Source: Klebsormidium nitens
Lineage: Eukaryota > Plantae > Klebsormidiophyceae
Direction: 5' to 3'
Assembly (NCBI GenBank): GCA_000708835.1
Contig: DF237414.1
Coordinates: 1-64,000 of the forward strand
DNA: 64,000 nt
The stretch's first letter is position 1; every line of letters starts with the position of its first letter. Positions 1 to 64,000 of this stretch are shown here, one piece after another. A program made the position numbers and the translations under genes. The notes below the pieces were generated by a model, which saw nothing but the letters and a program-made list of their open reading frames with translations, made no database searches and was not told where the DNA came from.

Positions 1-109
1 TCATTCTCCCCTCAGGCTCCAGCTAGGGAGCCCTGCTTTTAGACGCTTCTCTACTCTCCTGAACTTTTCTATATCCAAGATCTTGTGAAGTTTGCTGCAA
101 GCTTGTCCA

Positions 110-1627
110 ATGCCAATGGCGGCAAATAGTACCACTTTGGCAAGTGGAGGGGCAGCGGTTGGTGTTTTGCATGCGGCCAGCAGGGCGGCCAGCAAGGAGA
201 GACAGCTTAGGTTCGCTTTGGAGCTCAAGACAGGAGTATGGGCCACAGGACGCACTTTTGCGAGCTGCAATTGTGCTAGACTGACGAGCTGGGTTTCCCC
301 AGCGGCAGTTTTGCGATGCGTGCAGCTGAAGTGGCAAGCAAAGAACCGCGCTTTCTTGCTTGCGCCTGGCGGCTCTGCCTTGCTCCTGCAGCGTGATAAG
401 AGAAGACGCGCATCATGTCTCATGCTTTCAGAAGACACTGCACTGAGAGCAGGCTCTGAAGATTCTTCGGTGGTAGAGGAAGTAGCTAAGAGCCAAGAAA
501 CAAAGTACTTTGTCAGGATAGAGACGAGCCGCTCCACAGGGTCCAGTTTGAGCCGGCCTGAGGATGGCATTATGGTCGCGCTTCTGGGGCCAGCCGGGCA
601 ATTCGTCTTGAGAAAGTTAGATACTCAAGGAGACGGCGCTGAGAAGAATGAAGGTCCGCAGGTCTTTGGTTTGAGTGGGAGTTTTGACATTGGCGCGACG
701 GCAGAAGCTCATTTCACGGGGCCTTCTCTGGACAGCATTGAAAGGGTCTGGCTGTCCCCTGTAAGCGGAACTTGGCGACCAGCAGCAGCCGGCGTCCTTG
801 TGAAACAGGCCAGCATTGAGGCGAGTGAAACTGCTCCTGACATGCTTTGGCAAGATGCTGACATCAATCAAAGCGGGTCATCGGAGGTTTCCAAGGGCAG
901 CCAAAATAGTGACACAAGTGTGGTTGGAGACAGAGACAAAGAAGCAGAGTTGGACAAAATACCATCTGTATTATACTCGTTCAAGTGGAACGAAAGTCTC
1001 ATTGGGGAGGGCTGTGAAGAGTCTGCCGCGCAGCTAGACCCGGCGGGGGTTCACACTGAGGACGCCATGAGCCAACTGACGAGCAGATTGAGTAATTCGA
1101 TGGAGGAGTTGGCCGCTACAAGGGCGGCCGGATTGGCAGAGTACCAAGAGCTCAAGGTGTTTCTCTTAGGAACCACTGCGGCTTTGGTGGGAGTTGGCAC
1201 GCTAGGCTCAAAGCTTGCGTTTGGCGATGAAGTTGGTATTGGATTCGCAGCCGGGGGCTTGGCGGGGTTGCTCTACCTTCTCTTGCTGGAACGAACGGTA
1301 GATCAGCTAGGAAAGGGAGAGGCGGTCGAAGCCACAGGCACGGTTGGGTCATCTGGTACGCACTCGGAACAACAAGAATCAAGCAGTCGCAGCGAAGGTC
1401 CTCTTGACAGGATTTTGAATAAAGTAGCTCTCATTGCCAAAGGGCCTGCGAGTAGGCTAGTCTTAGTTGCCTTATTGGGCCTTGTTGCTGTAAAATATGT
1501 GGGCGGGAATGACACGAGGAGTCTCGAGCCTCGGCAGATTCTAGGAGGTCTAGCGGGCTTTCTTGTTTACAAACTTGCCGTCCTTTCTGCAGCTTTTCGA
1601 CCTACCAATCGAGCTATGGACAGGTGA
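110..1627 (+). CDS. Intronless plastid-targeted membrane protein: transit-peptide-like N-terminus, central PLAT/LH2-like (DUF7755-type) domain, C-terminal AtpI/CGL160-like hydrophobic domain
   Basis: The ORF is uninterrupted for about 505 codons; the first in-frame ATGs are at 110 and 116. The N-terminus is A/S/R-rich. The central motif FTGPSLDSIERVWLSPVSGTWR and the C-terminal helices (YQELKVFLLG, GGLAGLLYLLLLERTVDQLG, GFLVYKLAVL) match a conserved plant family recalled from memory. Confidence 0.75.
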   Translation: MPMAANSTTLASGGAAVGVLHAASRAASKERQLRFALELKTGVWATGRTFASCNCARLTSWVSPAAVLRCVQLKWQAKNRAFLLAPGGSALLLQRDKRRRASCLMLSEDTALRAGSEDSSVVEEVAKSQETKYFVRIETSRSTGSSLSRPEDGIMVALLGPAGQFVLRKLDTQGDGAEKNEGPQVFGLSGSFDIGATAEAHFTGPSLDSIERVWLSPVSGTWRPAAAGVLVKQASIEASETAPDMLWQDADINQSGSSEVSKGSQNSDTSVVGDRDKEAELDKIPSVLYSFKWNESLIGEGCEESAAQLDPAGVHTEDAMSQLTSRLSNSMEELAATRAAGLAEYQELKVFLLGTTAALVGVGTLGSKLAFGDEVGIGFAAGGLAGLLYLLLLERTVDQLGKGEAVEATGTVGSSGTHSEQQESSSRSEGPLDRILNKVALIAKGPASRLVLVALLGLVAVKYVGGNDTRSLEPRQILGGLAGFLVYKLAVLSAAFRPTNRAMDR

Positions 1628-12997: not shown

Positions 12998-13425
12998 GGG
13001 TACCGTCACTTTGAAGTGGCACCCCCTTAGGTATTCCGTTGGGGGGGGGGGGCTTGGGTTGCTTCAGCCAACCATAGGCGGGGAGGGGGGGGGTGCTTGT
13101 GGCCTTTCACTTGGGGCGCAGCCCCAGCTGGATCCTAGCTATAGAGATTCCGCTTTTTGGTGCTAATTTGTCCTCGTTTAGCAGGTTTTTAGCCCACGGG
13201 ACTGAGAATTAGGCCCTCGAATGCACCAAGATGCACTTCCCAACGTAAAAGAAGGGCAAAAATGTGTATACGACAGTGCTTTTCTGGCCCGGCTGGTGGC
13301 TGACCGGCCCGGGGCCTTGACCATTTTTGTGAAGACAAGGCCGGGAGGGGGGGGGGGCTTGTGACCCTTTGGCCAAAGTGCCTCTAAAATACCTAACCGG
13401 GTGCCACCTCAAAGTGACGGTACCC
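12998..13425. mobile_element. Tourist-like (PIF/Harbinger) MITE, 428 bp, non-autonomous
   Basis: Left TIR is GGGTACCGTCACTTTGAAGTGGCACCCCCTTAGGTATT (12998-13035). The right end reverse-complements to GGGTACCGTCACTTTGAGGTGGCACCCGGTTAGGTATT, a 35/38 match. TTA flanks both ends (12995-12997 and 13426-13428). There is no transposase ORF, and the interior has poly-G tracts. Confidence 0.9.
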
Positions 13426-17100: not shown

Positions 17101-18456
17101 CTTGACTTAGCCACGGACGCACGTTTCGCAGGTGGAGGACTGCTCGCAGACGTTCGGCCTGGTGCTCGACTTCCGCATGCTCGCGCACATCAAGAAGGAC
17201 GCGGTCCCCGGGGAGCCCGGCCGCGAGTCGCGCTACGACAAGGGCGCGTGCAGCGTCAACCGGGGCGTCATGGCGGTGAACGCCAACTTCTGGCTCATCA
17301 AAAACATCACCGGGCACATCGAATGGTGGATGGAGCACTCGGGGCGCGGCAAGGCGGCGCTCTACAGGTGAGGGGCTCAAACGAGATCGATCCGCGTTTT
17401 CAGTCGGCGTTTTGCGAATTGTTGAAAAGAGGTTTAAGCACGTGGTTTTTGCGGCGATTTCCTACGCACCGAATCCTGCTTTCGTGTCGCCGAGAAGTGG
17501 CACACTTCGTAGTGCGTTGAGCGAGTCCGAACGTAGCATACGGGCTGACCGCAGCCTTACGTGTCACCTTGACGTGACGGCGTTGTTTCAATTAGAGTGG
17601 GCGATCTTTATCTCTGACGGCCAATCGGAAGGAATGCTGGCGATCTTCGAAGCAGATCGTTTAGCCCCCTTCTGTTGAGTTGGCGGAGCGAAGTCGATGT
17701 CGATGAGCCGGAATTCTGATCTACTGTCTTCGATCGACGGCGAGTACCTCAGCCGCTGTTGTCTGTTCCATGCGTTGAAAGCGGTTGTATCGGTCCCGAT
17801 TGAGTGGACCGCTGAGCACCGAGCGCTTTGGCTTCGTCCCTTTGGCCGAGAAAATGAGCACGAGAGGGCTATCTGCCGGGAAACTCGGTCTTTGCCCGAG
17901 AGAGAGGAGGGCGCAGTTTCTGCGATCGCTATGGTTGATCGTGCTCCAAATTTTCTCTGTACAAACAATTTCATTTATTGTTTGTCGGACCTGCTTTACC
18001 CTGAGGTGTGCTTCTTCGTCGACGAAAACCCACTATGTTAATATTCTTTTTCCCACCGGCAGGTACGGACAGGCACAGCCCCCTTTTCTCCTCGCAGCCA
18101 ACAAAAAGTACATGAAGCTGCCGTTAGAGTGGAACGTGCGGGGCCTCGCGCGGGACGAGTTTATAGGCAAAGAAAAAGAGGGTCTCGCGAAGCTTGGGTA
18201 CGACAAGGATTACTTCGACAAGATAGGGGTCCACGGAAAGAAGCCGTTCGTCTCGCCGTTTGCAGACACGGCTCGCGTGTTGCATTTTAACGGGCGGCAT
18301 AAGCCGTGGATACGAGGCCGGGATAGGGAGCCCGGGGAGCAGCCGCCCGCGCTGTGCGGCCAGCAGTTGGTAGATTGTGCGCAGCTTTGGTGGCAGTATC
18401 TGTCTCCAAAGGCGGAAGAAATCCTACTTGACTTGGAGAGACGACTAACTTTATGA
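14148..18456 (+). CDS. Glycosyltransferase family 8, type II membrane protein (GATL/GAUT/GLT8D-related), 5 exons
   Basis: Exons are 14148-14521, about 14924-15031, 15889-16107, 17132-17367 and 18063-18456, in consistent phase. There is an N-terminal TM helix (VVCWLLAVLAVTLFIT), a DxD motif (IIYLDTDVVVKADI), and the motifs EDCS, QPPFLL, WNVRGL and LHFNGRHKPW. Confidence 0.92.
16560..17185 (+). repeat. Tandem array of the GT8 exon-4 acceptor and exon start: 3 intronic copies plus the functional one
   Basis: The core GGACTGCTCGC(A/G)GACG(T/C)TCGG starts at 16573, 16771, 16967 and 17137 (spacings 198, 196, 170). The copy at 16967 keeps tgcag|GTGGAGGAC. Confidence 0.9.
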
Positions 18457-38378: not shown

Positions 38379-41300
38379 TTAATTAGGCTCACAGGACTCA
38401 AGCAACCGCATCCGCTTTTGCCGCCTCATATTAGCGCCGGCCTGCCTCGCAATATGCGCCACCACCAACCGAACCTGCGGAAAGGTCACGCTCTCTTCGG
38501 GCGGTATCCTCTCCATAACCGCCTTCAACCTTATCTTGTCAAAGCAATCCGCGCTTTTGTCCCCTGCTGACGTCATCCTGAGCCCATCAAAGCTCCCTCC
38601 AGCCCATCTGTCTTCGGAACAGCTTTCGGCGCCCTTAAGGAGCGGCTGGGCAATGCCAGCAAACTGGGAACTTACTCCACGACCCCTTTCGCTCGGCGCC
38701 CCAGGGTTCCCTCCTACTAAACTTCTATTTAACCCCTCCTCAACCTCGTTTGGCTGCCCGGGGTCCTCTACTAACCCGCTCTCGCCTAAACCTTGCCCAA
38801 CCCGATTTTCTACCTCAGCCCCGCCCTCAGTTACTTCTAACTCCGCCTTGACCGCGCGCTCAATCCGCTCCCTAACAGCGTCGCTAACCCCGAGCCGATG
38901 CCAGGCGTACGCGAGCCCCGCCTGGGTTGCTTCAACCAAGTAGCTCTCGACCGTGGTTACCCTTACCCCCTTCTTAACCGCAATCTCTTCGATCGTTAAC
39001 CCGTCCAAATGCAACCTGTGAACGTCCATTTTGGACGGCGCAAGGTAAGACGGCTCGGGGACTGCGGGGATCCATGCTTCCGAGGTGGGTTCTGCCCCCG
39101 GGTTAAGCTCTGAGTTAGGCCCCGGGTTAAACCCCGGGTTAACGAGAGAGTTAAGCTCAGACTGGGGAAGTGGCCGGAGGATGGGCCGGGGAGGAGGGGC
39201 TGGCAGCGACATGAGGACCTGAGCAAAGCGGGCGTTTCAATTGAGACTATGAAAAGGTCAAAGGTAGGTTAGAGGTTAGAGGTTAGGGATCCCCCGCAAC
39301 TTGAAGGGACCCCAGAAATGGGCTGCCATTGATGAGCAACTCTTTCTTCACTCTTTCATGTAAGAATGCGCGCTTTTCGTGTAATGGAAGCCTCGCAGAA
39401 AAGCGCTTGGCTGCCGCAACTGAACGTCCGCGCACCACGTTACGTTTTTACAACCAGCGTCGACTTGATCGAATCGCATCTCGGTCGAGTCTTCGCGAAA
39501 AATGTCAACACCGTCCTCCCAAGCAATCGCAGACAGATAAGAGCGAGCCCCTTACCTGGTAGAGGCGAAGTGAAGCATACGCGTCGGTGGCCGCATATTG
39601 GCGCTGGTCGGGTGAGAGCGGGAGCCTCTCCCAGTCGCTGATGCGCTGCTTGGGCGGCTTCTCGACCTGCGCCGAGAGGGATCAACCGGGTCCAGGCAAA
39701 GTCGAGCTTGAAGACTTTTACCAACTTGCGCTTTGCGCCTTGTTGGAAAAACTACTTTTCACTTCTCGACTGCTCTCGGTTGGAAGACTCGGAGCGCAGG
39801 CAAATGAGCGGCTTCTCGAGCTGCGCCAGCGGAAATGAACCAGATTCTGACTAGGTCGAGGTTGAGAGAGAGGCATTCCAAGTTGCGCTCGGTTGGGAAA
39901 GCCGGGTAAAGAGCGTGCTTAGACGTCGCGATTGCGTTCGGTGGAAGGAAACCCAAACCTGATGGACCGGCTAACCGAAGCGCTCTCGGGTGCATCAATC
40001 AGGGCGGCTATAATATTTCAAAGACTCCAAAACCAGATTCACGAAAGTTTCAAAATGTTGGTTAGGTTGCAAAGTCCCGCCCGCTGCGGCATCGCCTAGT
40101 CTGCAAGTGCCACAATAAATCTAGAAATCTAGGTTCGCAAACTTCAATCCACTCGAACGCCGAGAAACGCAGACCCGGGCTTCGGAGCTGTCGGAACCCG
40201 TTTGCTGCAGCGTCGCTTCTTGCACCAACGCCACACAAGACCCGTAGGGACTTGCAATCCGCTGAACTCCACACGTCCAAAAGCCCGGAGCTGTTGGGGA
40301 ACCCGGGTACCAAACCTTTGGTTAAATCACGAGATTCACGCAACCTTTTTCCCTGCTGCAGCATCAACTCCTGCGCAAGCGCCGTTAGGCTCCTTTTTTG
40401 AGGTGAAGGTCCCGCGAAATCGCAGAAGTCAGCAACTCCAAACCTCTAAGAAAGCGAAAACCGGGTGCGATAACACTGGTGAGGTTATTGTCACCCACCT
40501 GCTGCAGCATCGCCTCTTGCGCGAGCGCCGTAAGGCTCCACTTCCTGGGGCCGTCTTTCGGCTGCAGCCGCTCGTTGGCCAAGTCGCTCAGGTCCCGCAG
40601 GCCCCCCATCGAGACGCCAAAGTCTCGGCGCAGCTTCTGGGCGTCTCCGTAAATGCCGGCGCCAGCCTGCACGGAGTGAAGAAAAAGCGGAAACCGTCCG
40701 AATCGTCTCCCGGTGGAATAAAGAAGTACTGTACACAGAACAACAAAACGGCAGCTCCGTCAACATCAATACAAGTTGCTTCACGAGATCGATCAAAATG
40801 AATAAACTCATCATTTCAGGACTGAGTGAAGCGGAACGCAAAAGAGATTCCTTCAGGTAAGGGGCGGAGTGTTGGGAGTGTCTAATTCTGTTGTCAGGGG
40901 TGGAACTTTCGAAAAGTTTGTTTGACGACTTCTTTTTCCAAGAGGCGGGGCATCGTTAGGAAATACTAGCCGCTTGCCCGACCACTTATGCTGCCAACGG
41001 ACCATTTTCGAAGCAGAACCTGTTTCTCCAAGAAGTTCGACGATAGGGGTGCGAAGGAACAGGCAACAACCAACAGGAGAACGAGTCTGAAAGCAGACGT
41101 GAAGCTACAAATCCGAACCATCATTGCAACAGTCTGAATCCAACAAGACGACTTGAGCACGGGCGGTAGAGAGCTCCAGGAGACAGACGGAAGAAGCACG
41201 GAAACTCTGGAAGATTCAAGCGACGGACTTCTTTGGGAGTCGCGCAAAAGTTCTAAGCTTCTTTGAGGATGTTGATTGAGCAGACCTGTACGCTTTCAGA

Positions 41301-43085
41301 TCCTGCTGAAGTAGGAAAAACACTCGCCAAAACACACTCCCACAACGGATTGAAAGAGTGCAACAAGGGAACGCAGGAAAGTCTGAACGAGGGCTGCGAT
41401 CTCACCTTCCCAACGCTTTGCTCGTCAAGCAAGGCCCGCAGGGATGACGTCAGCCCAGAATGCGCGATGTGGAAGAGGTAGCAGCAGGCCCCGCTGGGGC
41501 ACAGCTGGATCAGCGCAGCCTTCTGAGGGGTCTCGCCTGGAAGAAAGACAAGATGGAACCCTGATTATAAACCACAAAACATAAAACAGTTTTATAATCA
41601 GGGTTCTGCCCTTTCAAGTTGGAATACGCAGAGGCTTTGGAGCGTTATGCTGAATTGCTACACAAAGATGACGCTGAAGAAAGACGGAACCTCTCACTTC
41701 GCTTCAGCAACTGCAGGCTCAACGGACAACCACCAATAAATAATGTCGACAAGAAGTGATCACAAGAGGAGGGGCCTGGTTTTGATCATAATTCAGGTCT
41801 CGTAACCATCTTCACTGGCCTTTCCACAATCCTGGCAGACAGCAAACCTGCTTGTTTACCGATATTCTTGTGCGGCCCAGAGGTTTAGTAAAGTTTCGTG
41901 CCCTTAGTGGAGCCATCTTGGCTGTAAGACAGACCACTTTCTGCCAAGTCTCTTGACTCAATCAAACGTCTTGTCACCCCCTTTCCAGGTGGCCAAACCC
42001 CTTTTTGTTGTAGAGCCAGTGTGCTTTGACAGCAGAAACTCCTCACCTCTCCTGAACGTCACCTTCCACTCAATGTCGAACCCCAGGCACGCATCGCCCC
42101 CCCTCAAGTCCTCCAGCAACGTCCGAGCGGAGCATTCCACTTCCTGGGGACTGACCGCATACACAATCCTTCCCCCGAACCGCATGATCGGTAGCGTGCA
42201 CTCCTGGGGGGGCCCCGCCGTCCTTGCTGATGTCAGCCAGGCGGGCAGCTGGCGGACGCTGAGACCATCGTCCTGGCCGCACTTTGGAAGGGTTTGGTCT
42301 CCGATGGTTTTCGGAAGATCTGGAAGTGAATCGGGATCTGGGCAGATTTGGGGAAGAGGCTGGGCACTTGAATTGCTCTCAGGGACTGGCGCTGCTATTC
42401 CAGAGGAATTGATTGCAGCAACAGGGCGGGGCACTGTGAATGCACTTGCCGCCAATGGCGTCGCTCCACTCTTGGGCCCGTCTCGCCGCCCAGACGAGGC
42501 AAGGCCGACCGGCTCTTGCGATGCATCACCCAGTCCACCTCCCGTCCATTTCTGTACTTGTGCCACGCCAACTGTTGCACAATCCTTGCCAGTTTTCACA
42601 TAGCCTTCCTCAGCTGTCGCACGGTTCTCGGCGGCCGTCACACAGCGCTCGCCAGCTGTCGCACCCATAGCGCCAGCTGTCGCGTGATCAGGCCAGAAGC
42701 CAGGGAAGCCCCGTTGGGAGGGCACCCACTCTGAGAGCGACATCGCTTCAGGCCACTCGTGCTGACTTGACCCCAAAGAGTGGTCCGCTACACCACCGCT
42801 GCGCGGAGCTTCGGTTGCCTGAAAGCTTGTCCCACTAGCAGTATTCCTGGAATCAGATGTCTCTCCTGTTTGCAAATCTTTCCCTTGTGCTTCAAGCTTA
42901 CTCCTCTCTGGAGTTTTGACTGGTTCCAGGCGGGACGGTTGGCAAACAGCCTTTGCGTTGTCAAAGTGAGATTTGACCACCCCATTGCGCCGATGAGCAT
43001 CACGTTGCTGGACGGCAGCAGCCATGGCCTGTTCCAGTGCCGCCCACTCCTTGTCATCGACCCACTCAATCTCAGAGAGGTCCAT
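38379..43085 (-). CDS. WEX: Werner-syndrome-like DEDDy 3'-5' exonuclease with a disordered N-terminus and a C-terminal WRN/RecQ-type helix-turn-helix (HTH_40-like), 5 exons
   Basis: Exons are 43085-42047, about 41540-41403, about 40666-40499, 39666-39556 and about 39218-38379. ExoI is LGFDIEW, followed by ALIQLC; ExoII is GIYGDAQKL, followed by WSLTAL; ExoIII is QRISDWERLPLSPDQRQYAATDAY. The C-terminal HTH reads LHLDGLTIEEIAVKKGVRVTTVESYL..IRLKAVMERIP..VTFPQVRLVVAH. Confidence 0.9.
39264..39290. repeat. Short telomere-like tandem repeat (GGTTAGA) in the last WEX intron
   Basis: Sequence ggta ggttaga ggttaga ggttagg. Confidence 0.6.
40078..40550 (-). repeat. WEX exon-3 end and donor: functional copy plus three intronic copies
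   Basis: Plus-strand CCTGCTGCAGCATCGCC-like units start at 40498, 40352, 40202 and 40080 (spacings 146, 150, 122). Confidence 0.85.
41556..41606. repeat. Perfect 16-bp inverted repeat with a 19-nt spacer, next to the WEX intron-1 acceptor
   Basis: GAACCCTGATTATAAA (41556-41571) and TTTATAATCAGGGTTC (41591-41606). Confidence 0.9.
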
Positions 43086-53700: not shown

Positions 53701-56700
53701 GTAAATGGCAACTTCACCAAGAGGATAGAGGTGACGGGCACACGGATGCACGATCTGATGTTGGCTCAATAATCTGCTGCATGCAAATGTCGCAAAAAAA
53801 ACCTGGCAATCAGAACATTGAGCAACTGTTGTCCTTGGATAGGGTAAAAAGCAGTGGCTTTTGCTACAGAGGGTCGATTTCGAAGTGACGTGCTTTCGTT
53901 GTTCCACGTTGGAATAAGAGGACTCTTTCCACGTTGGACTACCGGGGATCTTACAAAACTTACAAATGACCAGGTAAGAAGCTAGGCCTTCACAGAGCAG
54001 GCCCTGTTCAGCCCTCCAGCGTCGGAATCCCCCCCACAAATCATGCAAACGTCTAACGCTGAGAAGCTGGTCTCTCGCAGAGCAGGGCCTCTTCATCCGT
54101 CCAACTCACTTGTGCTCGCCCTCGACGGCGTCCCGGATCTTGGCCCACAGAATGTTGACCTTCTCAAAGTGCATGCGGCCGCACTCCTTGTGGAAGTCAA
54201 ACGGCCAATACCTGCAAGAAGAATCCAAACTCATTGAGTTTAGAATGTAAAGTTCAGTACCTTCCCGTCGGGCTATGCCTACATTGAAAGTACTGAAGCA
54301 CACAAGAGAGCCGGCCAAGGAAAATATTGCGGACCTATATTGGACCGACTTAAGCTGCTTCGAGACTCAGGACGGCCCACAGAAGCCTCTCAAACTAAGA
54401 CGATCCGCCTCTTAAGTCTGTAAACCAATCAAAATGTCACAACTCGTGAGAATCTGCTCGTGACGAAATTTGGAAAAGCTTCAAGAACGAGACTGGAAAT
54501 TGGCTACAACCTTAACGCCAGCCGGCTAGGGTGGCCTTCGAAAAAGCTCAACAGGCCCCTTTCTTGCAATATAAGAAGCTAGGGAGCCGAGTCATCCATG
54601 AAGACAAAGAAGGGCGGGAGCCAGCTAAGAGACAAGCAGAACTTCTCAGGGGTTTCTCGCTCCAACACGGAGCTTCCAAAAATTTGCACTCACGAGACGG
54701 CAGCATTTGTTTCGCTGATGACCGCCATCTCCTTCTTGTAGGCAGAACCGAGAACCGCCTCCCCGCCTTTCTGCAAACGAAGAAGGTGGGGTTACCCAAA
54801 AGTTGACAAACGATCTGATTGCACGGCATCGCGACTTTTACGCTGATTGAAACGTATAATCGGGTAGAAAGGCGACCACTGTTCCCGACGTCCCAAGCTC
54901 CACAGGCTACTTATCAATCAACGTAAGAATTCTTTGATGTATGACGTTCAGCAACTACAAAGCCCGCTGCGCACGTTACTGGTCGCCAGTATTGAGACCA
55001 CGTAGGCAAACTTGTTGCGACAATGGGGCCAATCTGGCACCTTTTAGGCGCCGAAAAGTAAGTTCGGAGTAGGCCCCTTTGGTATCAACCATACTCACGC
55101 GAACAGGTGGCACGTTGTTCTTCGGAAACCCGTGCTTGGAGATTGGTTGAAAGCAGCGCATGTTTTAGACCAGCGGAGTCGGGTTTGGAAACTTGCCTGG
55201 TTGACCAGATCAACGGCCACGATGCCGCCGTACGCCTTGCTCAACTTCTCGAAGTGCTGCTTGGCGACAGACATCTGAAACAAGAGGTACAAAAAGTCAG
55301 CCGACTTGCCGGTATTACATATGGTAATAGGACGATATGTAAGCTGAGTGTGTGACCAGGTTCGAAAAAGGCCTGTGGTCCTCTGGAAGATACTAGACAT
55401 GAGCAGTTTCGAACTCCTGCTTCAAGTTTACGTAAGTATCTCCACTTTAGATGCGGAAACAGAGCGAAGGTAAAAGACCTCGCAAAGCAAGTTCGCCGGT
55501 GCCGACGATATGATTAAATAATAGCTTCCTTGACTTTGTTTGATCGGCCAATTGCCAGACTAAGCCGGGCTTTCATCGAATCGCGAAGTGCCCTCAGGTC
55601 TGCAATCAGAGTCAGAATCATGTCAGCGACCGAAAGTGACCGGGCCTGACTTGCAAATAGTAGGGCAACTCCTCGGCTCAGTGAGAGCTCGCAAAAGTGG
55701 AAACACAGGATCTGTATAGAAGATAGGTAACTTACGCTGGTACTGGTCTCCACCGTTCTGATCTTCGGCTTCCATTTCAGGTCCACCACCTGGTCCCAGA
55801 AGATAGGGATTGAGCCCCGGACCTGCATCAAAAAATCAGAGACGCTGGATCAGCTTCACCCTCAATGATGTCTTGGCAAACAACAAAACGTGCGGGAACC
55901 TCAGGACGTCGGAAAACCCGTTGAAGATGCAATTCCTACAACTTCGCCTAATTATATCCGTTTTGATCGATAACAACGTGCCGCAATCTCACAGCTTCTA
56001 GATGCCCTGGCTGAAGCTGCAAGCAACCCCAACTCTTTCTTACTCGCAGACCCGTCCCCTTTGAGAATTGTTGCCTGGTTCCATTGACTCACTCGTCCCT
56101 TGCCGAAGCATGTGACCCTAAGTCGAGCCAAAGGAATCAGTCGGTTCCTCTCCAAAATGGGAGGTTAACAACATACCGGCATCTTTGCTACTAAGTCGAA
56201 ACGACGGCTTTGGGAGCATCGTCTCCCTGCCTACCTGGATGTATGACGCAACGTGGTTCGCAGTCAAGACGAGCTGCTCCGTCTCCACGAAGTTGGCCAC
56301 GTTCCCGGCCTTGTCTGCCCCTCGCCTCCACATGCGAGTGCCAATCCGGTCCGAGCTCCTCCTTGCTATCAGGGTGAGATCGAGCGCCTTGTTCTTGATG
56401 CCCTGCGCTTTCAGGGTCTGCACGCTACCTTGCATGATGGGGATGATGAACGGGTCCAACTGCAGAAGGGGAGTCAGTGGAATTGTTGAAAATCCATGAT
56501 TTAAAAGACGGCAACAGGAACGTCAGGCAAACCTAGTCTTCCGGATTTACGCTCAGTGATATGTTTATGCAGACCTCGCCCAGACATGATCAATCTGCTT
56601 TCTTTATCTGGCAAGACTTGCCGGTGCCAAGTCGAAACAAATAGGACGACGTCGGCGAGAGTTAGAACACACGTGGAATGCAGAAGAAAGAAAGTCCAGT

Positions 56701-58455
56701 TAACCGCACTCACCCGTTTCTTGATGAGAGGTTCGACAAGGTAGCGGTTCCAGAAGAAGCGCGGCTCCGCCTGTACGGACGCGGAAGAAAAGTTTGCGTT
56801 TGCATTCCGGATGAATTCCGGATGTCTCCAAGGAACCCCATTGTTCAGAGGGCCTTCCAAAAGACATCCTGCACTTCAAATGTTCATGCAAAAGCAACAG
56901 GTTGTACTGACGGTGTGAAATGTTTTTTTGAAGCCTATCCAGAGCTTTCGTATTCAGGCAAGAACTCTTTCATATCAAACTCACTCGTTCGGCCAAGGAA
57001 TCGGAACTCTTCCTCAACTCCAGTGCGAATGTTCACTGACAAAGTTATTGACAAAGCATGAGCTTTCACCTTCCGATCCAATATTTGTTTTAGCAAGTAT
57101 TTGCAAGACGGTTAAGCCCGCAAAGAGGGTGAACAAACATGTTACTGGAACAGGAAACATAAAATATACTGGTAATATTGACCGTAAGGACCAGCCAAAG
57201 GATCTCACTCGCTCATACTCCGGCTTTGCGAGGTCTTCCTTGTCAAGCGTGGCAAAGCTCTGTTGGCTGCAGCAACAGCCAAAAGATCCAGGTCAGATAA
57301 GAGGACTACTCTTACACTTGCTTCAATCACCCGGCAAAATCCACAGCAGCTTCAGACCAGTAATGCGCCACAGGCCTCATGAGGGCAACATTGCATTTCG
57401 GAATGAATCAGTCAAGGAAACTGGCTGCGCATAGGCCAGCATGCAAGGCGTACTGTCTTACTTTAGTGTGATATCTCCCTGGGGCGAAAAGTACAGGCCT
57501 GGCGCCGCCAAAGCGTGTCGGAGCAGAGTCAAGTAGACTTCTTCGTCGTGTTTCTGGACACAGAGGACTTTGGCATAAGCTGCCTATCAACTCCAATACA
57601 AGAAGCTAAGCTTATAGATTGAGCTGCCTTTACTGAACATGCAAAGTTTTCCAAGCTGAAAAATGGATTGAATCAGTGACTATGCACTATTCAAACCGAG
57701 GAATGCTCTGGAATGGTCACTCACTTGTGAAGAGGACAGCTGATCGCTGGAAGAAGAGCACTGCAGGATCCGTGTGCCTGTGATTTGGTACACCGGCTGC
57801 CCGCGCAGTGTTGCAACAAGCTCCCTGTTTGTGATCACAATAACGTACGTTCCTGCAGACAAGCAACTATCCCTTGTTGACATTGCAGAGTGCGGAGGTC
57901 TACAAGTGGTGGTGAAGGCCAGCAAATCTCAAGCCGAGGTTTCCTTGGACTCTTAAGATACTACGAGTCAGAAAGACCAATAAGGGCATGCACCTTGGAT
58001 TGCACTTAAAATGAGGTTGATCAGCTTTTTATAGTTACTTGGTGTCATGAGATGCATTGGGGGACTGACCTGCAATCAACTTGATCATGCCAACGACACC
58101 ATACACCTTCTCTCCCTGCAGAGGCTCAGCAGGTACACCTGCAATCAAGCGTTACAATTGGCAGTAACACTCAGAGTGTGAATCAAAGCTAGGCTGAAGA
58201 AGGCACTCGATTGAGGCATGAGCTGAGCTGATGAGCTTCATGGTTTGATTGGGTGTCTTCAAACGTAAGCGTCCCTCATTAGATCGTCACGCTGCAGAAG
58301 GAAATTGCCCGTAGAAACTCACTCTTTGTTGACACATCTCCAGTCTTCCTATCCACAATCAGCGCCTGTGATGGGGATCCGTTTGCAGCTTTCAGGACAA
58401 AGCTGCTCGGGCTCTCCTCAAGGTAGAATTGTGCGTGCAGAGTGTCGCCGCCCAT
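50775..58455 (-). CDS. SAC1: SAC-domain phosphoinositide phosphatase of the yeast/animal Sac1 type (plant SAC6/7/8 class), about 14 exons, two C-terminal TM helices
   Basis: Motifs in order: [73 protein letters not shown], the catalytic [17 protein letters not shown] (CX5RT), [49 protein letters not shown], and C-terminal QLCDRPRL*. The ATG is at 58455. Confidence 0.95.
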
Positions 58456-59104: not shown

Positions 59105-62100
59105 ATGCCGCCCAAGGCATCTTCTGCCGCAGAAACCAGGGTGTACAAGGGGACTACGAATGTCAATGGCAAGTCCTACTGGCGGCACCCAAGCAGGCCG
59201 TGGGTGGTGGTCAGAGGGAAAGTCCCTGGTTTGTATGCTCTGCTTAACGGTGCGTTTCCTCTTTGTTCCCCTTCTTATTTTCAGGAAACAGCTTCGTATC
59301 TCTGTCATTGTTTTGTTCTGGGAGCTCGATGGTGTCTGCTTTGTCTTGAAGTCCACATTGTAACCTACACATGGTTAAGGTCTATGCATAATAGAAGCTG
59401 GATGAGTTCAGAGTCTTGTTTAATCTAGCGTAATCCGGCCCGCTCTAAGCCTGCACCTGGCATCCATTGAGAGTGCCTGTGTTGCGATGCCCCCACTCAG
59501 GCTTTCGGTTAAGTTGATTGCTTATCTACATCTTTCAATCGCTCCGTTACTAGTATTGGCCATTTTCCTCCTTGCTCTTCCTGAAGCCTGTTGTGTCTGT
59601 AGGCCCCTATGGAGCGGAGAATCAGATCAAGGGGTATCCTTATGGCAAGTACGTCCGCCAGAGTTCCCACACGGAAGCAGTTGCCTTCCTGGATGCCAAT
59701 GGAATGGACATCAACACGCACGATTGGGCGAGGCTCCCTGGGGATGAGAGACTTCTCGCAGAGTGGAACAGGTAGGCCTTGTTCCGATTCAGCCCCACTA
59801 ACCATTTTTGTGGCTTACAATAACCAGAATAAACTACCGCTCAGACTGCTGTAAAATGCCCTTTCGTTCCCTCTTCCTTCGTTGGGGGTCAGATCGCGGA
59901 GACTTTTTGGAAATTGACTGTGCAACTCAATTGGAACCTTCGCTCTTCTGTATGCATCCATTTTGCAAGCTCAATGTTCAGGCGAACGCCTTGTTCTGAT
60001 TGCCTACAATCAGCATCTCTCTGCCGCCAACTGGAAATGAGGTTGACTTTGAATGCAATCAAGTATCACCTTGGGCGTCACAGTCACGCTTGGACTTCTT
60101 AGTAAAATCGAGATCCTGGCCTTTGCTTTGTACCCTTAGCTTCAAGTATCCCCTTAGAGGAGCTCTTTTAAGTATCCCCTTGGACTGAGCTCCTCTGAAG
60201 CACTTCCACATGGTTGAGACAGCTGTGCCCATTGACTGTACCCTGTTTCCTTGAGCAGGCAGATGGCACTCTATGAAGAGAAGGTCAACGGGGACCCAAA
60301 CTTCCTTGAACAACTCAGGGCGGAGGGGCGTGCCCTGGGCCTCACGGACGAGGCTGATCAGCCTCCAGACGAGTCTACGATGCTGCTGCGCCTGTCTGCG
60401 CGAATGCACGTCCTTGAGAAGGAAAACGAGGAGCTCAAGGTGGGGGCTGTTGTGCACACTCTCTTTGCCAAGATTTTCGATGTTGAGGAAGTGAACGAAG
60501 AGAAAGCAACAAAGGGAGAGGTATACAGGTTTGTTGAGCAACAAAGGGAATGTGCAGCTGCCTAGGTGAGACCTGTCGATCGGGGCTTCTGAATTGGAGA
60601 TTGGTCGTCTGTTGGCTGCAATGAATGAGAGACGACTTGAACTGTGGAAAGCTCCTCACCCTCCTGTGTCTGAATAGCCCTTTGAATATGATTCGCACCA
60701 TCGCATAACACAAGAAATATTTCGTTGGAAAGGATCTCAATGAATTGGACAGAGAAAAAGGGAGATTCCTGACAGGGAGAAACAATGAGGGAAGTCTCGA
60801 GGCTATTTTTAGGGGCAGAACGGAGCTCAACTCGATTGCTGCAGGCCGCAAACGTCGCGCAGCAGACCATGTATCGCAAGGCGCTCGTCGAGGCAGACAA
60901 GATGGCGCAGAAGCAGGTGATGCGCCAGTTTCGTGAGTTCCAGGCGAAGGAGGAGGCGCTCAAGAAACGGATTGCAGAGCTCGAGGCGACCCTCGCAGCG
61001 GTACCCGCCCTCGGGGAAGCTCCACCCCTGCAGATCACGGATGGCGGGACGGAGTCAGGGGGTGCGGGGCTGGCGAGTGCTCCGCGAGGGAACAATGGGG
61101 GGGTTTCGCAAGCTGCTAACTTTACAGAGGAAGGAAGGTCTGTCAGGGACGAAGGTCCGGCAAGGGGAGAAGGGGGATCGAGAGGGGCAGAGTTGGACCG
61201 ATCGATTGCGAATCGTGCGGCAGAGGCCGTGAGATTTGACAGGTCGGGTGCGCATGTGAGCGGGACGCAGGAGGCGCAGTTCGACAGGGGGGCTGATACG
61301 CAGGCGCCAAGGGGGGGCCCACCTGAGGAGCAGGATGGGGGCGTAGACGGAACGGGGGTGCTTTCTGACGACGAAGAAATGTTGGCGGAGATCCTGAACG
61401 GGGGCTTGAGCGGCGCCGAAGCCGAAGAAGCTGCGGCGTACCGAGAGGTCGGGGCCAAGCGGGACGGGCAGCACAATGTGGGGCCGCCGAGGCCCAGCAC
61501 TGAGCGGGGACAGCGAGAGAACGAAGTCGAGATGCATTCGGAGGAATTCACAGCAACCGGAAATGGTGGGAGCGACCCTGTGAGATCAGAAGATCAACTT
61601 GCAAACCCTCCTCTCGCGGATTTGAACCTTCCCCCGGGTCGGGTCTTACCGGTCATACCGTTCGGGGCCGTGGAAAACGCTCCTGCAGTCACCCCGAACA
61701 GGCCCGCCGCAGCTACGTCTTCCGTAGCGAGAAGCACCGAAGCTGCTCGGGCTTCGTCAGTGCCCTCGGTATGCGAAGCGTCCGCTTCTGTGCCTCTCTC
61801 AGGGATCAGGGCCCCTTTAGAAACGACTGCCCGCGAAACCCGGGTTGAAAGGACGGTCCCACAACTCCCCGTTGTCAGTGTGCCCCGTTTGCCGAATGTC
61901 GCCGTCGCCCCCCGTCCTGACGGTCCTTTGCCAATCGAAACGATCACTGGGCCTCGCACATTGCAAAGTCGGGTCGAAGTAGAGAGGCCTGACCAGGCTT
62001 CGAAAGGGTTGGCTGCACCAAGTAGACCGCAGGCGGGTTCCGGGCGAGAGTCGGTGCCTCACAATGTGGTCACGCCCGCTGGTCCTGCCCGGGTTTCCCC

Positions 62101-64000
62101 TAACCCTGCAGCTAACCCCGTCGACCCACATCTCAACAACCAAGCTCCGGTTACTGATAACCCTGCGGGGTTGGGTGGGGTTACTGCCGACCGGGCGGCC
62201 GCTCTGGAGGGTCTGTTGCAGAGCGGGGTGTTCAAGAGTGCGGCTCGGCATAGGCGGAAGCTGCTGATGACGTATAAGGGGGGGAAGCAGCCGGCGAAGA
62301 AGCCAACCGCACCGGCTCCCAGGAAAACGGACTACGTCAGGCAGGGCGAGGAGGGATACGTAGAAGGGGAGCAGAGCGTAGAGCTTGGACGGTCCAGTGG
62401 GGAAGCGAGAGAGAGTAACGGAAGTTTTCGGACGGCTAGCGGGGTTGAGCAACTAGATGGGAGTCCGGGAGTTCCTCCAAAAGAACGTGGAGCTTTGGTC
62501 GCGCACCGAAGTGTTGGTGTGGGTGGGCCAGAGGCGACCAGCGGTATCGCCTTCCGATCCGTTGGCAACCAAGGGGCTCGATCCCTGCTACCAACGGAAG
62601 CTGTCGGAATGCCTGGGGCAGGGGTGGCGGCGCCAAGTTCAGCTGTTGGGGCGACTGTTAGACGCGCTTACTTCCCAAGTGAACTCATTCCTGCAGTTCT
62701 GACGGATGCGGGAACCCAAGCCACGGGTCTCGGGTCTGCCAGCGCAACTGAAGCGGCCAGTACACCTGTCGGAGCGATCGCGCCAGCTGTCGAGCCGCCA
62801 TTTGTGGACCCGAGGATAGCGCCCGGGCTTGGCATTCCGGTGGGGTTGCAGGGTCTTGGCCTTGGACTGGGACAGTCAAGACAGCCTAACCGACCCAGCG
62901 AACAAACAAATATGGGCTTGGAGGAAAATGCGGTCGCGGGGCAGGCGCCCGAGCCGGCCAAGAAAAGGGCGCCACGGAAACGAAAGAGCGCTGCAGAGAC
63001 CGGCGACCCCGCTCCGAGGAAGAGGAAGAAGAAGGTCGCCGGGGAAGGGACTTCAGGCGAGCTAGGAACCGGGGTGTCTACTGAGGCGTCGGGAGAGGTG
63101 GCAACTAGAGCGACGGGGACAACGGGAGGGGATAACGTAGCAGGAACGTCAGGAGGGGGGGTGCCTGGAGGGGCGGCTGGAGGGGAGGGTACTGAAATTC
63201 GGGTGGGTGCTAGGACCGGAGTCGGAGCGGAGAAGGCCAAGAGAAAGAGGGTGCGAAAGCCAGATTCGCGGTACTTCAATCCGGACGGGACGAGAAAGCC
63301 GGCGGAGGAGCGGCCGCCGCCAAAGCCACGAAGGGCACGTGAGTACTCCATTGCCCATTTCAAAAAAGCCAGTTTTTAGGCTGTCGTCGTATGGGCTTGA
63401 TGGCAACCAGAATCTCGATCGCTCTAACAAAGTCCGAGTCTTTGCTTCAGCTATTATTGCAATTCTGGATCGAGGCAGTTGGTCATTTCTGCACAGGGAC
63501 TGAGAGCAGACGACACTGATCCCTGACTCTTTCCTTGTGATGAAAGGCCCACATAAGTGCCACATCAAACAGTGCTCGCGGTATGTCGTCGAAATTGGTC
63601 CACCTCAGTGCAGGCCGTCAGATTGTTTGACATTGAACGGACTTTTCAGAAAGCAATAAGGAATGAGTCGAACCTGCTGAAGTCTCCCGCTACTGTGACC
63701 CGATGAAAAGATGGAACTTGTTGGAACATACATCAAATATCTTGGTAAGGAAGAAAACCAGCAGGAGAACTAACGGGTTTCCATATCCGCCATGCCTAAA
63801 TGCTGCCCACTCTCGATTTGCAGCCAATCCGGAGACCGAGCGCATAAAGAACAGGTGCCGCTTCGATGGCTGCTCCAAGTACGCGACGTTCGGCTACCCG
63901 ACCGGCCCCGGGAGCATCCGGCGCGCGCGCTGCGTGGCGCACAAGCTGCCCGGGATGCTCACGGACAAGAGGTGCCACGTCGAGGGTTGCGAGGTGGGTG
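59105..64000 (+). CDS. Large protein (over 1050 aa, 3'-truncated by the window): N-terminal RNase H1 hybrid-binding/Cauli_VI-like domain, coiled coil, long A/G/P/E-rich region, then EsV-1-7-like Cys-rich repeats
   Basis: Exons are 59105-59249, about 59602-59772, about 60259-60439, about 60771 (or 60845)-63338 and 63824-about 63993, in consistent phase. The splice-joined N-domain reads WVVVRGKVPGLYALLNGPYGAENQIKGYPYGKYVRQSSHTEAVAFL. The last exon reads CRFDGCSKYATFGYPTGPGSIRRARCVAHKLPGMLTDKRCHVEGCE. Confidence 0.8.

Follow-up and report, generated by a model that had tools for sequence, protein, structure and literature searches.

The hybrid-binding domain of eukaryotic ribonuclease (RNase) H1 and the viroplasmin domain of plant viruses belong to a single superfamily, Cauli_VI (PF01693) in Pfam. 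In the caulimovirus protein P6 (transactivator/viroplasmin), a member of this Pfam family, the domain is part of a non-catalytic scaffold protein. Of the gene-family expansions reported for brown algae, that of the EsV-1-7 repeat proteins (EsV_1_7_cys, PF19114) is to our knowledge the largest, and we know of no established biochemical function for them. They have been described as a possible new class of zinc finger that animals and land plants lack and that has expanded hugely in brown algae, where the member IMMEDIATE UPRIGHT (IMM) controls the patterning of the early sporophyte (10.1101/2024.02.19.579948; PMC7457493). The EsV-1-7 genes of Ectocarpus carry no other Pfam domain (10.64898/2026.04.27.720984). 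The gene described here, KFL_004650110 of Klebsormidium nitens, joins an N-terminal core resembling the first family to an array of EsV-1-7 repeats. It is located at the end of a 64,000-nucleotide stretch (contig DF237414.1 of assembly GCA_000708835.1, positions 1 to 64,000 of the forward strand), which was analysed as a whole and is called the window below.

The host, a green alga of freshwater and soil, belongs to the streptophytes and not to the brown algae. The most satisfactory reading of the locus, which we consider probable, is that of a resident, intron-bearing Klebsormidium gene encoding a non-catalytic protein in three parts, a diverged Cauli_VI core, a linker and five EsV-1-7 repeats, for which a function as nuclear adaptor is proposed. 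The gene itself was already public as a hypothetical protein and both domain families were known. New are the recognition of the hybrid-binding-like core at the N-terminus, its conserved pairing with EsV-1-7 repeats, and the finding that such a pairing is confined to Klebsormidium. The literature compared contains no mention of Klebsormidium together with EsV-1-7, nor of the KFL_004650110 gene, the taxon list of the family-defining 2017 paper lying outside this comparison.

Gene structure and conservation

The hypothetical protein KFL_004650110 (1216 amino acids, with PF19114 as the sole domain listed in its record) was retrieved by a word search with exon 4, which it matches at 100%. It coincides exactly, in all peptides and junctions, with the spliced model proposed in a sequence-only reading of the window, and the peptides quoted in that reading are found where it had placed them, as is the phase-1 junction between exons 4 and 5 (GCA C/gtgagt...ttgcag/CC AAT). 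The gene comprises 8 exons and 7 spliceosomal introns. Exons 1-5 occupy positions 59105-63993 (+) of the window, with GT..AG borders throughout, and code for residues 1-1053 of 1216; exons 6-8 lie past the window end. A GT donor at 63994 directly follows exon 5, and the window stops inside intron 5. One detail of the earlier translation has to be corrected: its final 'V G' is intron 5 sequence, because exon 5 ends at 63993.

The gene is also present in two Klebsormidium-like lineages, a Logan assembly of run SRR23617307 (L001) and the JGI metagenome 3300060284 (L002). Both were reached via proteins that prokaryote-style callers had built from exon 4, and the comparisons were made exon by exon. 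A tblastn search with KFL_004650110 recovers 8 of 8 exons in each, with order and strand unchanged, and a SacI-domain gene is found upstream on the opposite strand in the window, in L001 and in L002. That exons 1-8 are linked as one gene is strongly supported by these sequences, short of proof: donor and acceptor sites and intron phases are kept in all three lineages, including the phase-1 GTGAGT donor of exon 4 and its matching acceptor, despite differing flanking codons; the unspliced exon 4 frame meets a stop within 4-14 codons in each of the three; the public annotation independently gives one protein. A gene model that fuses two genes, exons 1-4 on the one hand and a separate EsV-1-7 gene starting at or after 63824 on the other, would suit the breaking of the locus into pieces by prokaryote-style callers and the length of intron 4 (485 bases), but the splice sites, the stops and the conserved exon order and strand make it very improbable. 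The claim that both modules reside in one conserved gene is thus borne out by the exons, splice phases and neighbour that the three lineages share.

Selection acts unevenly along the protein. For exon 1, the ratio of non-synonymous to synonymous substitution rates (dN/dS) is 0.023 against L001 and 0.044 against L002 (amino-acid identity 98% and 92%, respectively), and for exon 5 it is 0.022 and 0.043 (98% and 88%). Exons 2 and 3 give ratios of 0.008 and 0.059 against L001, with dS saturated against L002 in both cases (identities 98% and 89% for exon 2, 97% and 77% for exon 3). For exon 4, the values rise to 0.386 and 0.329, with identities of 64% and 45%. Both ends of the protein are tightly constrained, and its ~830-residue middle drifts. 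A streptophyte alga therefore possesses a well-conserved EsV-1-7 gene under purifying selection.

Intron 5 of L001 contains, at 13201-13286, another copy of the 3' part of exon 5, shifted in frame. It covers residues 1025-1053 with 100% identity to K. nitens and may reflect either a small duplication or an error of assembly.

The locus is a resident host gene and not a viral insert. A recently integrated giant-virus or mobile-element gene might be evoked by the abundance of EsV-1-7 repeats in giant viruses, by the good alignment of the algal repeats to viral ones, and by base composition, exon 4 raising the G+C (guanine plus cytosine) content to 0.575-0.596 (window positions 60001-64000) as compared to 0.48-0.56 in the rest of the window. 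This composition, together with the positive GC and AT skews, fits a disordered coding region rich in Gly, Ala, Pro and Arg. The gene contains seven spliceosomal introns; its exon structure and its synteny with the SacI gene extend over three lineages whose synonymous divergence ranges from 0.35 to >1.7; the other window open reading frames (ORFs) that were scanned exhibit plant-type or ordinary Pfam domains (CGL160/DUF7755, GT8, HTH_40, Syja_N) or none, with no viral Pfam match among them; and in scans of viral contigs neither end of the protein has a close relative. Recent insertion is on these grounds extremely improbable, and the suggestion of a domesticated viral or mobile gene made in the sequence-only reading finds no support in this context. 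The EsV-1-7 repeats themselves may be of viral origin, if that origin is ancient.

The N-terminal core

Residues 33-77 of the protein form the hybrid-binding-like core, which intron 1 divides in two. A Pfam scan of residues 30-85 returns Cauli_VI as the sole match (E 0.0091, 16.7 bits, profile positions 4-44 of 44). Pfam scans of exons 1, 2 and 3 taken separately return no match; the core is invisible to an exon-by-exon scan because intron 1 splits the domain. In NCBIfam, the single match is RNaseH_Halikb, a bacterial RNase H model, at its N-terminal positions 7-47 (E 0.11). A tblastn search with residues 28-82 against 2.3 gigabases of phage records yields as top match (E 2) a segment that scores as a verified Cauli_VI domain in its own right (29.2 bits), with 36% identity to the algal core and a pairwise E of 3e-7. 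The segment is part of a Faecalibacterium protein, where it stands ahead of a UvrD helicase. BLASTP of the core to verified domains gives E values of 3e-7 and 4e-7 per comparison. The algal core also aligns without gaps to the Pseudomonas plasmid protein WOF82056.1 (L007), annotated 'RNase H1/viroplasmin domain-containing' and scoring 44.2 bits with Cauli_VI. The alga and both bacterial domains share a three-residue insertion after strand 2, Y-G-x-x-G-A-x-x-Q, which is missing from canonical domains.

Profile comparison was performed with a reference set of six verified domains, each passing Pfam (25-72 bits); four of them, canonical domains from viral contigs (62-72 bits), had been gathered with a bacterial and not the algal domain as confirming query. 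The hhalign probability for residues 20-95 is 95.1% against all six (E 3.3e-8, score 40.7, 46 columns) and 73.4% against the four canonical viral domains alone (score 27.5). Among 200 shuffles of the query, the highest scores are 21.5 with the six-domain set and 17.5 with the four-domain set, and the reversed query scores 9. The peptides RGKVPGLY and HTEAVAFL align to invariant columns V, G, P, G, Y, Q, G and A of the reference domains, and a strict G-x-x-PG-[ILV]-Y regular expression occurs once in the six frames of the 64 kilobase window. Taken together, these alignments indicate that the core is very probably a diverged member of the RNase H1 hybrid-binding/viroplasmin (Cauli_VI) domain superfamily, despite missing the Pfam threshold, and an atypical one as judged from its sequence. 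The identification of the first pattern as the RNase H1/P6 domain is hence the most probable one by hhalign, NCBIfam and the bacterial domains, and it stands below what Pfam would accept.

No RNase_H family match is found anywhere in KFL_004650110 (Pfam, E ≤ 1). The catalytic domain, noted as not visible in the window, is likewise missing from the whole protein, which is therefore not an RNase H enzyme.

The distribution of the N-module is narrow. No relative is found outside the Klebsormidium group by word search, by HMMER against 1.84 billion proteins or in two metagenome scans. Word searches with the N- and C-regions of KFL_004650110 return the protein itself only, and two metagenome and two viral scans for close relatives of either region find none; a viral scan with the algal sequence as first row confirms no relative. 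A PHROGs search gives no match, and PDB sequence searches with the N-region return only ankyrin/DARPin noise on residues 66-91.

The C-terminal EsV-1-7 array

The second pattern had been assigned to the EsV-1-7 motif, an assignment that Pfam fully sustains. Exon 5 alone matches EsV_1_7_cys with an E of 5.7e-10 and 39.3 bits, far beyond chance given the threshold of 25. The whole protein reaches 137.8 bits in five stretches, and residues 1000-1216 reach 155.3 bits. The window contains repeat 1 and the C-x4-C knuckle of repeat 2; with the downstream exons, the count is five repeats, so that the motif of exon 5 is only the beginning of the array. Each repeat follows the pattern C-x4-C-x13-17-C-x2-H, then P-G-M. 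In an alignment of 38 double repeats from the alga and giant viruses, C, C, C, H and M are invariant in each repeat, which presumably binds one zinc ion.

The AlphaFold2 (AF2) model of algal repeats 4-5, based on this 38-row alignment, has a predicted local distance difference test (pLDDT) value of 74 and exhibits short strands and a helical turn at C-x2-H. Foldseek comparison of the repeat model with BFVD identifies 18 viral proteins at E ≤ 0.001. These include EsV-1-7 (Q8QNQ2, E 1.2e-5) and EsV-1-115 of the Ectocarpus virus, as well as proteins of marseilleviruses, pithoviruses, a cedratvirus, Faunusvirus, Klosneuvirus and a Tetraselmis virus; EsV-1-7, EsV-1-115 and other giant-virus proteins are matched at E values from 4e-7 to 1e-4. 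For several of the 18, the depositors chose the name 'Endonuclease' or 'DNA primase'. When viral contigs are scanned with the repeat alignment, giant-virus proteins emerge in which 8-12 repeats precede a conserved C-terminal domain of ~170 residues, for which neither Pfam nor the PDB provides a match. BFVD relatives of these proteins bear the depositors' name endonuclease, and the motif of the domain is vaguely reminiscent of restriction-endonuclease-like folds. The fusion of an EsV-1-7 array to a nucleic-acid-related module thus recurs in giant viruses, since viral arrays are accompanied by a further C-terminal domain and some of the proteins are named endonuclease or DNA primase by depositors. 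The description of the Klebsormidium architecture as unusual consequently needs a nuance: this particular pairing is found only in Klebsormidium, but EsV-1-7 arrays with other nucleic-acid-related domains are common in giant viruses. The hybrid-binding motif and EsV-1-7 repeats occur together in the Klebsormidium loci only, and in 0 of the fetched viral loci.

Residues 1000-1216 also pass PF24906, the land-plant 'WRKY19 zinc finger' (30.3 bits for a threshold of 27, three stretches). From these matches, the EsV-1-7 and PF24906 repeat families look related, at odds with claims that EsV-1-7 is absent from land plants. A link to the SBP zinc finger (Pfam SBP, E 0.039) was considered and dropped, as it receives no support from a PDB profile search.

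Weighing of the assignments

Several results weigh against the reading of the protein as a diverged Cauli_VI core joined to a zinc-repeat array. The Cauli_VI gathering threshold (21 bits) is missed both by residues 30-85, with the score given above, and by residues 1-110 (14.6 bits), and a Pfam scan of the whole protein returns no Cauli_VI at E ≤ 1. Two of the six reference domains were found via similarity to the algal protein, which inflates the 95% hhalign figure. A phmmer (HMMER) search with residues 1-110 against the 1.84 billion proteins detects no canonical hybrid-binding domain at E ≤ 0.001. The AF2 model of the N-module, derived from a shallow alignment of three near-identical lineages, has a pLDDT of 39. 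In the algal core, Leu47 occupies the column that holds Trp in 5 of the 6 verified domains, and Val66-Arg67 occupies that of the strand 3 basic pair; these positions probably correspond to W43, K59 and K60 of human RNase H1. The human W43A/K59A/K60A mutant does not bind hybrids (PMC6868509). On the side of the repeats, Foldseek comparison of the model with the PDB gives nothing below E 0.7, the weak matches being all small zinc modules, and PDB sequence searches return only C-x4-C knuckles of C2H2 fingers and no solved structure alike.

Some of these results would also be expected if the N-module were a lineage-specific domain with a chance likeness to the hybrid-binding domain, the protein being then an EsV-1-7 protein with an orphan N-terminus. 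The sub-threshold Cauli_VI score, the exhaustive HMMER search without canonical relatives and the low pLDDT point in this direction, as does the competing resemblance of residues 66-91 to an ankyrin repeat, which overlaps the last helix of the core. Such a coincidence is nonetheless improbable: three independent libraries or searches (Pfam, NCBIfam and the tblastn of phage records) indicate the same family over the same 44 residues; hhalign scores lie far above those of the 200 shuffles, also with the independently chosen set; and a verified domain can be aligned with the core along its full length without a gap. As to the ankyrin resemblance, all that phmmer lists for residues 1-110 besides a fragment of an orthologue are ankyrin and SprB repeat proteins; these repeat-protein matches are artefacts, because the score of one short segment is summed over the many repeats of the target, and no Pfam Ank match accompanies them.

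Residues 66-91 (59653-59730, VRQSSHTEAVAFLDANGMDINTHDWA) resemble one ankyrin repeat, attract DARPins and ankyrin proteins in searches, and are conserved in the orthologues. An identity as ankyrin repeat was rejected: Pfam Ank is not matched in residues 1-110 at E ≤ 10, and only a single repeat-length unit is present.

A second possibility accepts the fold but not its activity. The hybrid-binding fold would have been kept and nucleic-acid binding lost, so that the N-module would be the protein-protein contact surface of a scaffold unrelated to R-loops or double-stranded RNA (dsRNA). The replacement of the conserved Trp by Leu and of the basic and aromatic trio of strand 3 by Val-Arg-Gln, when considered with the non-binding human triple mutant, would agree with this view; the conserved module also reaches well past the 45-residue core, and the human domain is reported to bind the protein P32 as well (PMC3750045). 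Conversely, the G-x-x-PG-[ILV]-Y strand, the aromatic residues at positions 33 and 65 and the basic R67 are kept, and the core is under very strong purifying selection, though this is compatible with either function. We regard the loss of binding as unlikely, yet as an option that deserves serious consideration.

The linker and the proposed mechanism

The linker of ~830 residues has no Pfam domain in exon 4. A three-way alignment of the orthologues delineates five conserved islands in it (Table 1): a probable coiled coil, an acidic motif, a basic helix-like segment and two basic clusters. The last two look like nuclear localisation signals, and a nuclear location of the protein is putative.

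In the mechanism that we propose, the conserved N-terminal module (~165 residues, with a core of the insertion subtype) would bind RNA/DNA hybrids or dsRNA, or would provide a surface for protein contacts. The coiled coil, which leads into the disordered linker, would multimerise the protein, and the zinc repeats would bind DNA or another partner. The biological role of the whole protein might then be that of a nuclear adaptor bringing the EsV-1-7 function to nucleic-acid structures. Such a mechanism, in which a nuclear non-catalytic adaptor would grip a double-stranded nucleic acid with its N-terminal part and employ zinc repeats at the opposite end, is possibly right in its essentials, and we put it forward as tentative. 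The nucleic-acid sensing and the antiviral or R-loop role suggested in the sequence-only reading would be more speculative still, given the Leu at the Trp column.

A bolder view would take EsV-1-7 arrays for modules of zinc-finger type directed at nucleic acids, and the Klebsormidium protein for a non-catalytic reader of the cell that couples the recognition of hybrids or dsRNA to DNA or chromatin binding via its EsV-1-7 repeats. We consider this rather unlikely. If true, it would offer the first insight into the mechanism of a family to which IMMEDIATE UPRIGHT and hundreds of giant-virus proteins belong. The conserved fusion to a known nucleic-acid-binding family suggests, by guilt by association, that EsV-1-7 repeats act on nucleic acids or in their vicinity; the clue is a modest one, and the giant-virus fusions named endonuclease or primase by depositors point the same way. 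The gene is, in addition, a eukaryotic case of a hybrid-binding-type domain that is employed apart from RNase H. The reach of these considerations is limited by the restriction of the fusion to one algal genus and by the inferred nature of its function.

Features of the window

The features of the gene, its syntenic neighbour and the related giant-virus proteins are collected in Table 1.

Table 1. Features of KFL_004650110 and associated elements. Positions are those of the window, except in the last row, where each is preceded by the locus.
Feature	Position	Strand	Residues	Content or basis
Exon 1	59105-59249	+	1-48 and first base of codon 49	Start codon, conserved N-terminal extension, core strands 1-2
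Core strands 1-2 in exon 1	from 59201	+		WVVVRGKVPGLY; hybrid-binding-like core
Intron 1	59250-59602	+		Divides the core into 59201-59249 and 59603-59688
Hybrid-binding-like core	59201-59688, interrupted by intron 1	+	33-77	Cauli_VI, NCBIfam, BLASTP, hhalign
Exon 2	59603-59771	+	49-105	Second half of core and conserved ankyrin-like stretch 66-91
Exon 3	60259-60439	+	105-165	Conserved; start of probable coiled coil, weak coiled-coil family matches only
Exon 4	60845-63338	+	166-996	Long low-complexity, fast-evolving linker
Island 1, probable coiled coil	60854-61039	+	169-230	Three-way alignment; weak coiled-coil family matches
Acidic motif island		+	332-355	Three-way alignment
Basic helix-like island		+	620-674	Three-way alignment
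Basic cluster KKRAPRKRK	62954-63004	+	869-885	Three-way alignment
Basic cluster KAKRKRVRKPDSRYFNPDGTRKP	63212-63325	+	955-992	Three-way alignment
Exon 5	63824-63993	+	997-1053	EsV-1-7 repeat 1 and C-x4-C knuckle of repeat 2
EsV-1-7 repeat 1	63856-63957	+		Pfam, regular expression
C-x4-C knuckle of repeat 2	63973-63993	+		Rest of repeats 2-5 past window end
Neighbour gene, SacI homology (Syja_N)	55095-56860	-		Divergently transcribed; Pfam Syja_N E 5.5e-24; synteny marker
Giant-virus EsV-1-7 array proteins	L015:2626-4635, L017:2269-4065, L021:2314-4314, L022:2323-4098			C-terminal domain CGRERPD..ECDEHQH..CEQTRM..FIRWNPD

Elsewhere in the window, the ORF at 92-1627 (+) encodes a DUF7755/CGL160 C-terminal protein (Pfam), of a family linked to plastid ATP synthase assembly, and that at 17785-18456 (+) a fragment of a family 8 glycosyltransferase (GT8, Pfam). 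The ORF at 38379-39212 (-) harbours an HTH_40 domain, and the one at 41958-43085 (-), 375 residues long, has no Pfam match.

Comparison with known systems

The Klebsormidium core shares with the hybrid-binding domain of eukaryotic RNase H1 a length of ~45 residues, the strand motif G-x-x-PG-[ILV]-Y, the turn Q-[IV]-x-G-[YF] and a last helix with E-A-x-x-[FYW]-[LM], as well as an N-terminal position with a flexible linker next to it. The algal protein differs by its 1216 residues devoid of a catalytic domain, by the sub-threshold score of the core, by the three-residue insertion after strand 2 and by the Leu at the Trp column.

The bacterial protein WOF82056.1 and the Faecalibacterium UvrD fusion (L006) are closer in subtype: they possess the insertion, and their domain is combined with other modules and not with the catalytic part of an RNase H. 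Their identity with the alga is 28-36%, the bacterial Trp is kept, and the partner is a helicase or an unknown tail instead of zinc repeats. The 6.4 kilobase record MT837669.1 (L005), deposited as 'Bacteriophage sp.', shares 97% identity, in a comparison of 60 residues, with a scaffold of Faecalibacterium sp. CAG:74. In L005 and in L006 (1471-2400), a Cauli_VI domain is fused to a UvrD-type helicase, a use of the domain outside RNase H. Caulimovirus P6, likened here by family description, has nothing else of the architecture in common with the algal protein.

Regarding the repeats, the giant-virus arrays (L015-L022 and the BFVD entries named 'Endonuclease' or 'DNA primase') also combine an EsV-1-7 array with a second module, nucleic-acid-acting according to the depositors' names, and their repeats are 22-35% identical to those of the alga. 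Their 8-12 repeats are N-terminal, however, and are followed by a different, unannotated C-terminal domain, with no long linker, introns or hybrid-binding domain. The likeness extends to EsV-1-7, EsV-1-115 and IMMEDIATE UPRIGHT, all of which display tandem C-x4-C-x~16-C-x2-H repeats, then P-G-M; five repeats are reported for IMM (10.1101/2024.02.19.579948), as many as in the alga. As compared to this family, the Klebsormidium repeats are found in a streptophyte host, at the C-terminus of the protein behind an 830-residue linker, and are accompanied by a recognisable second domain.

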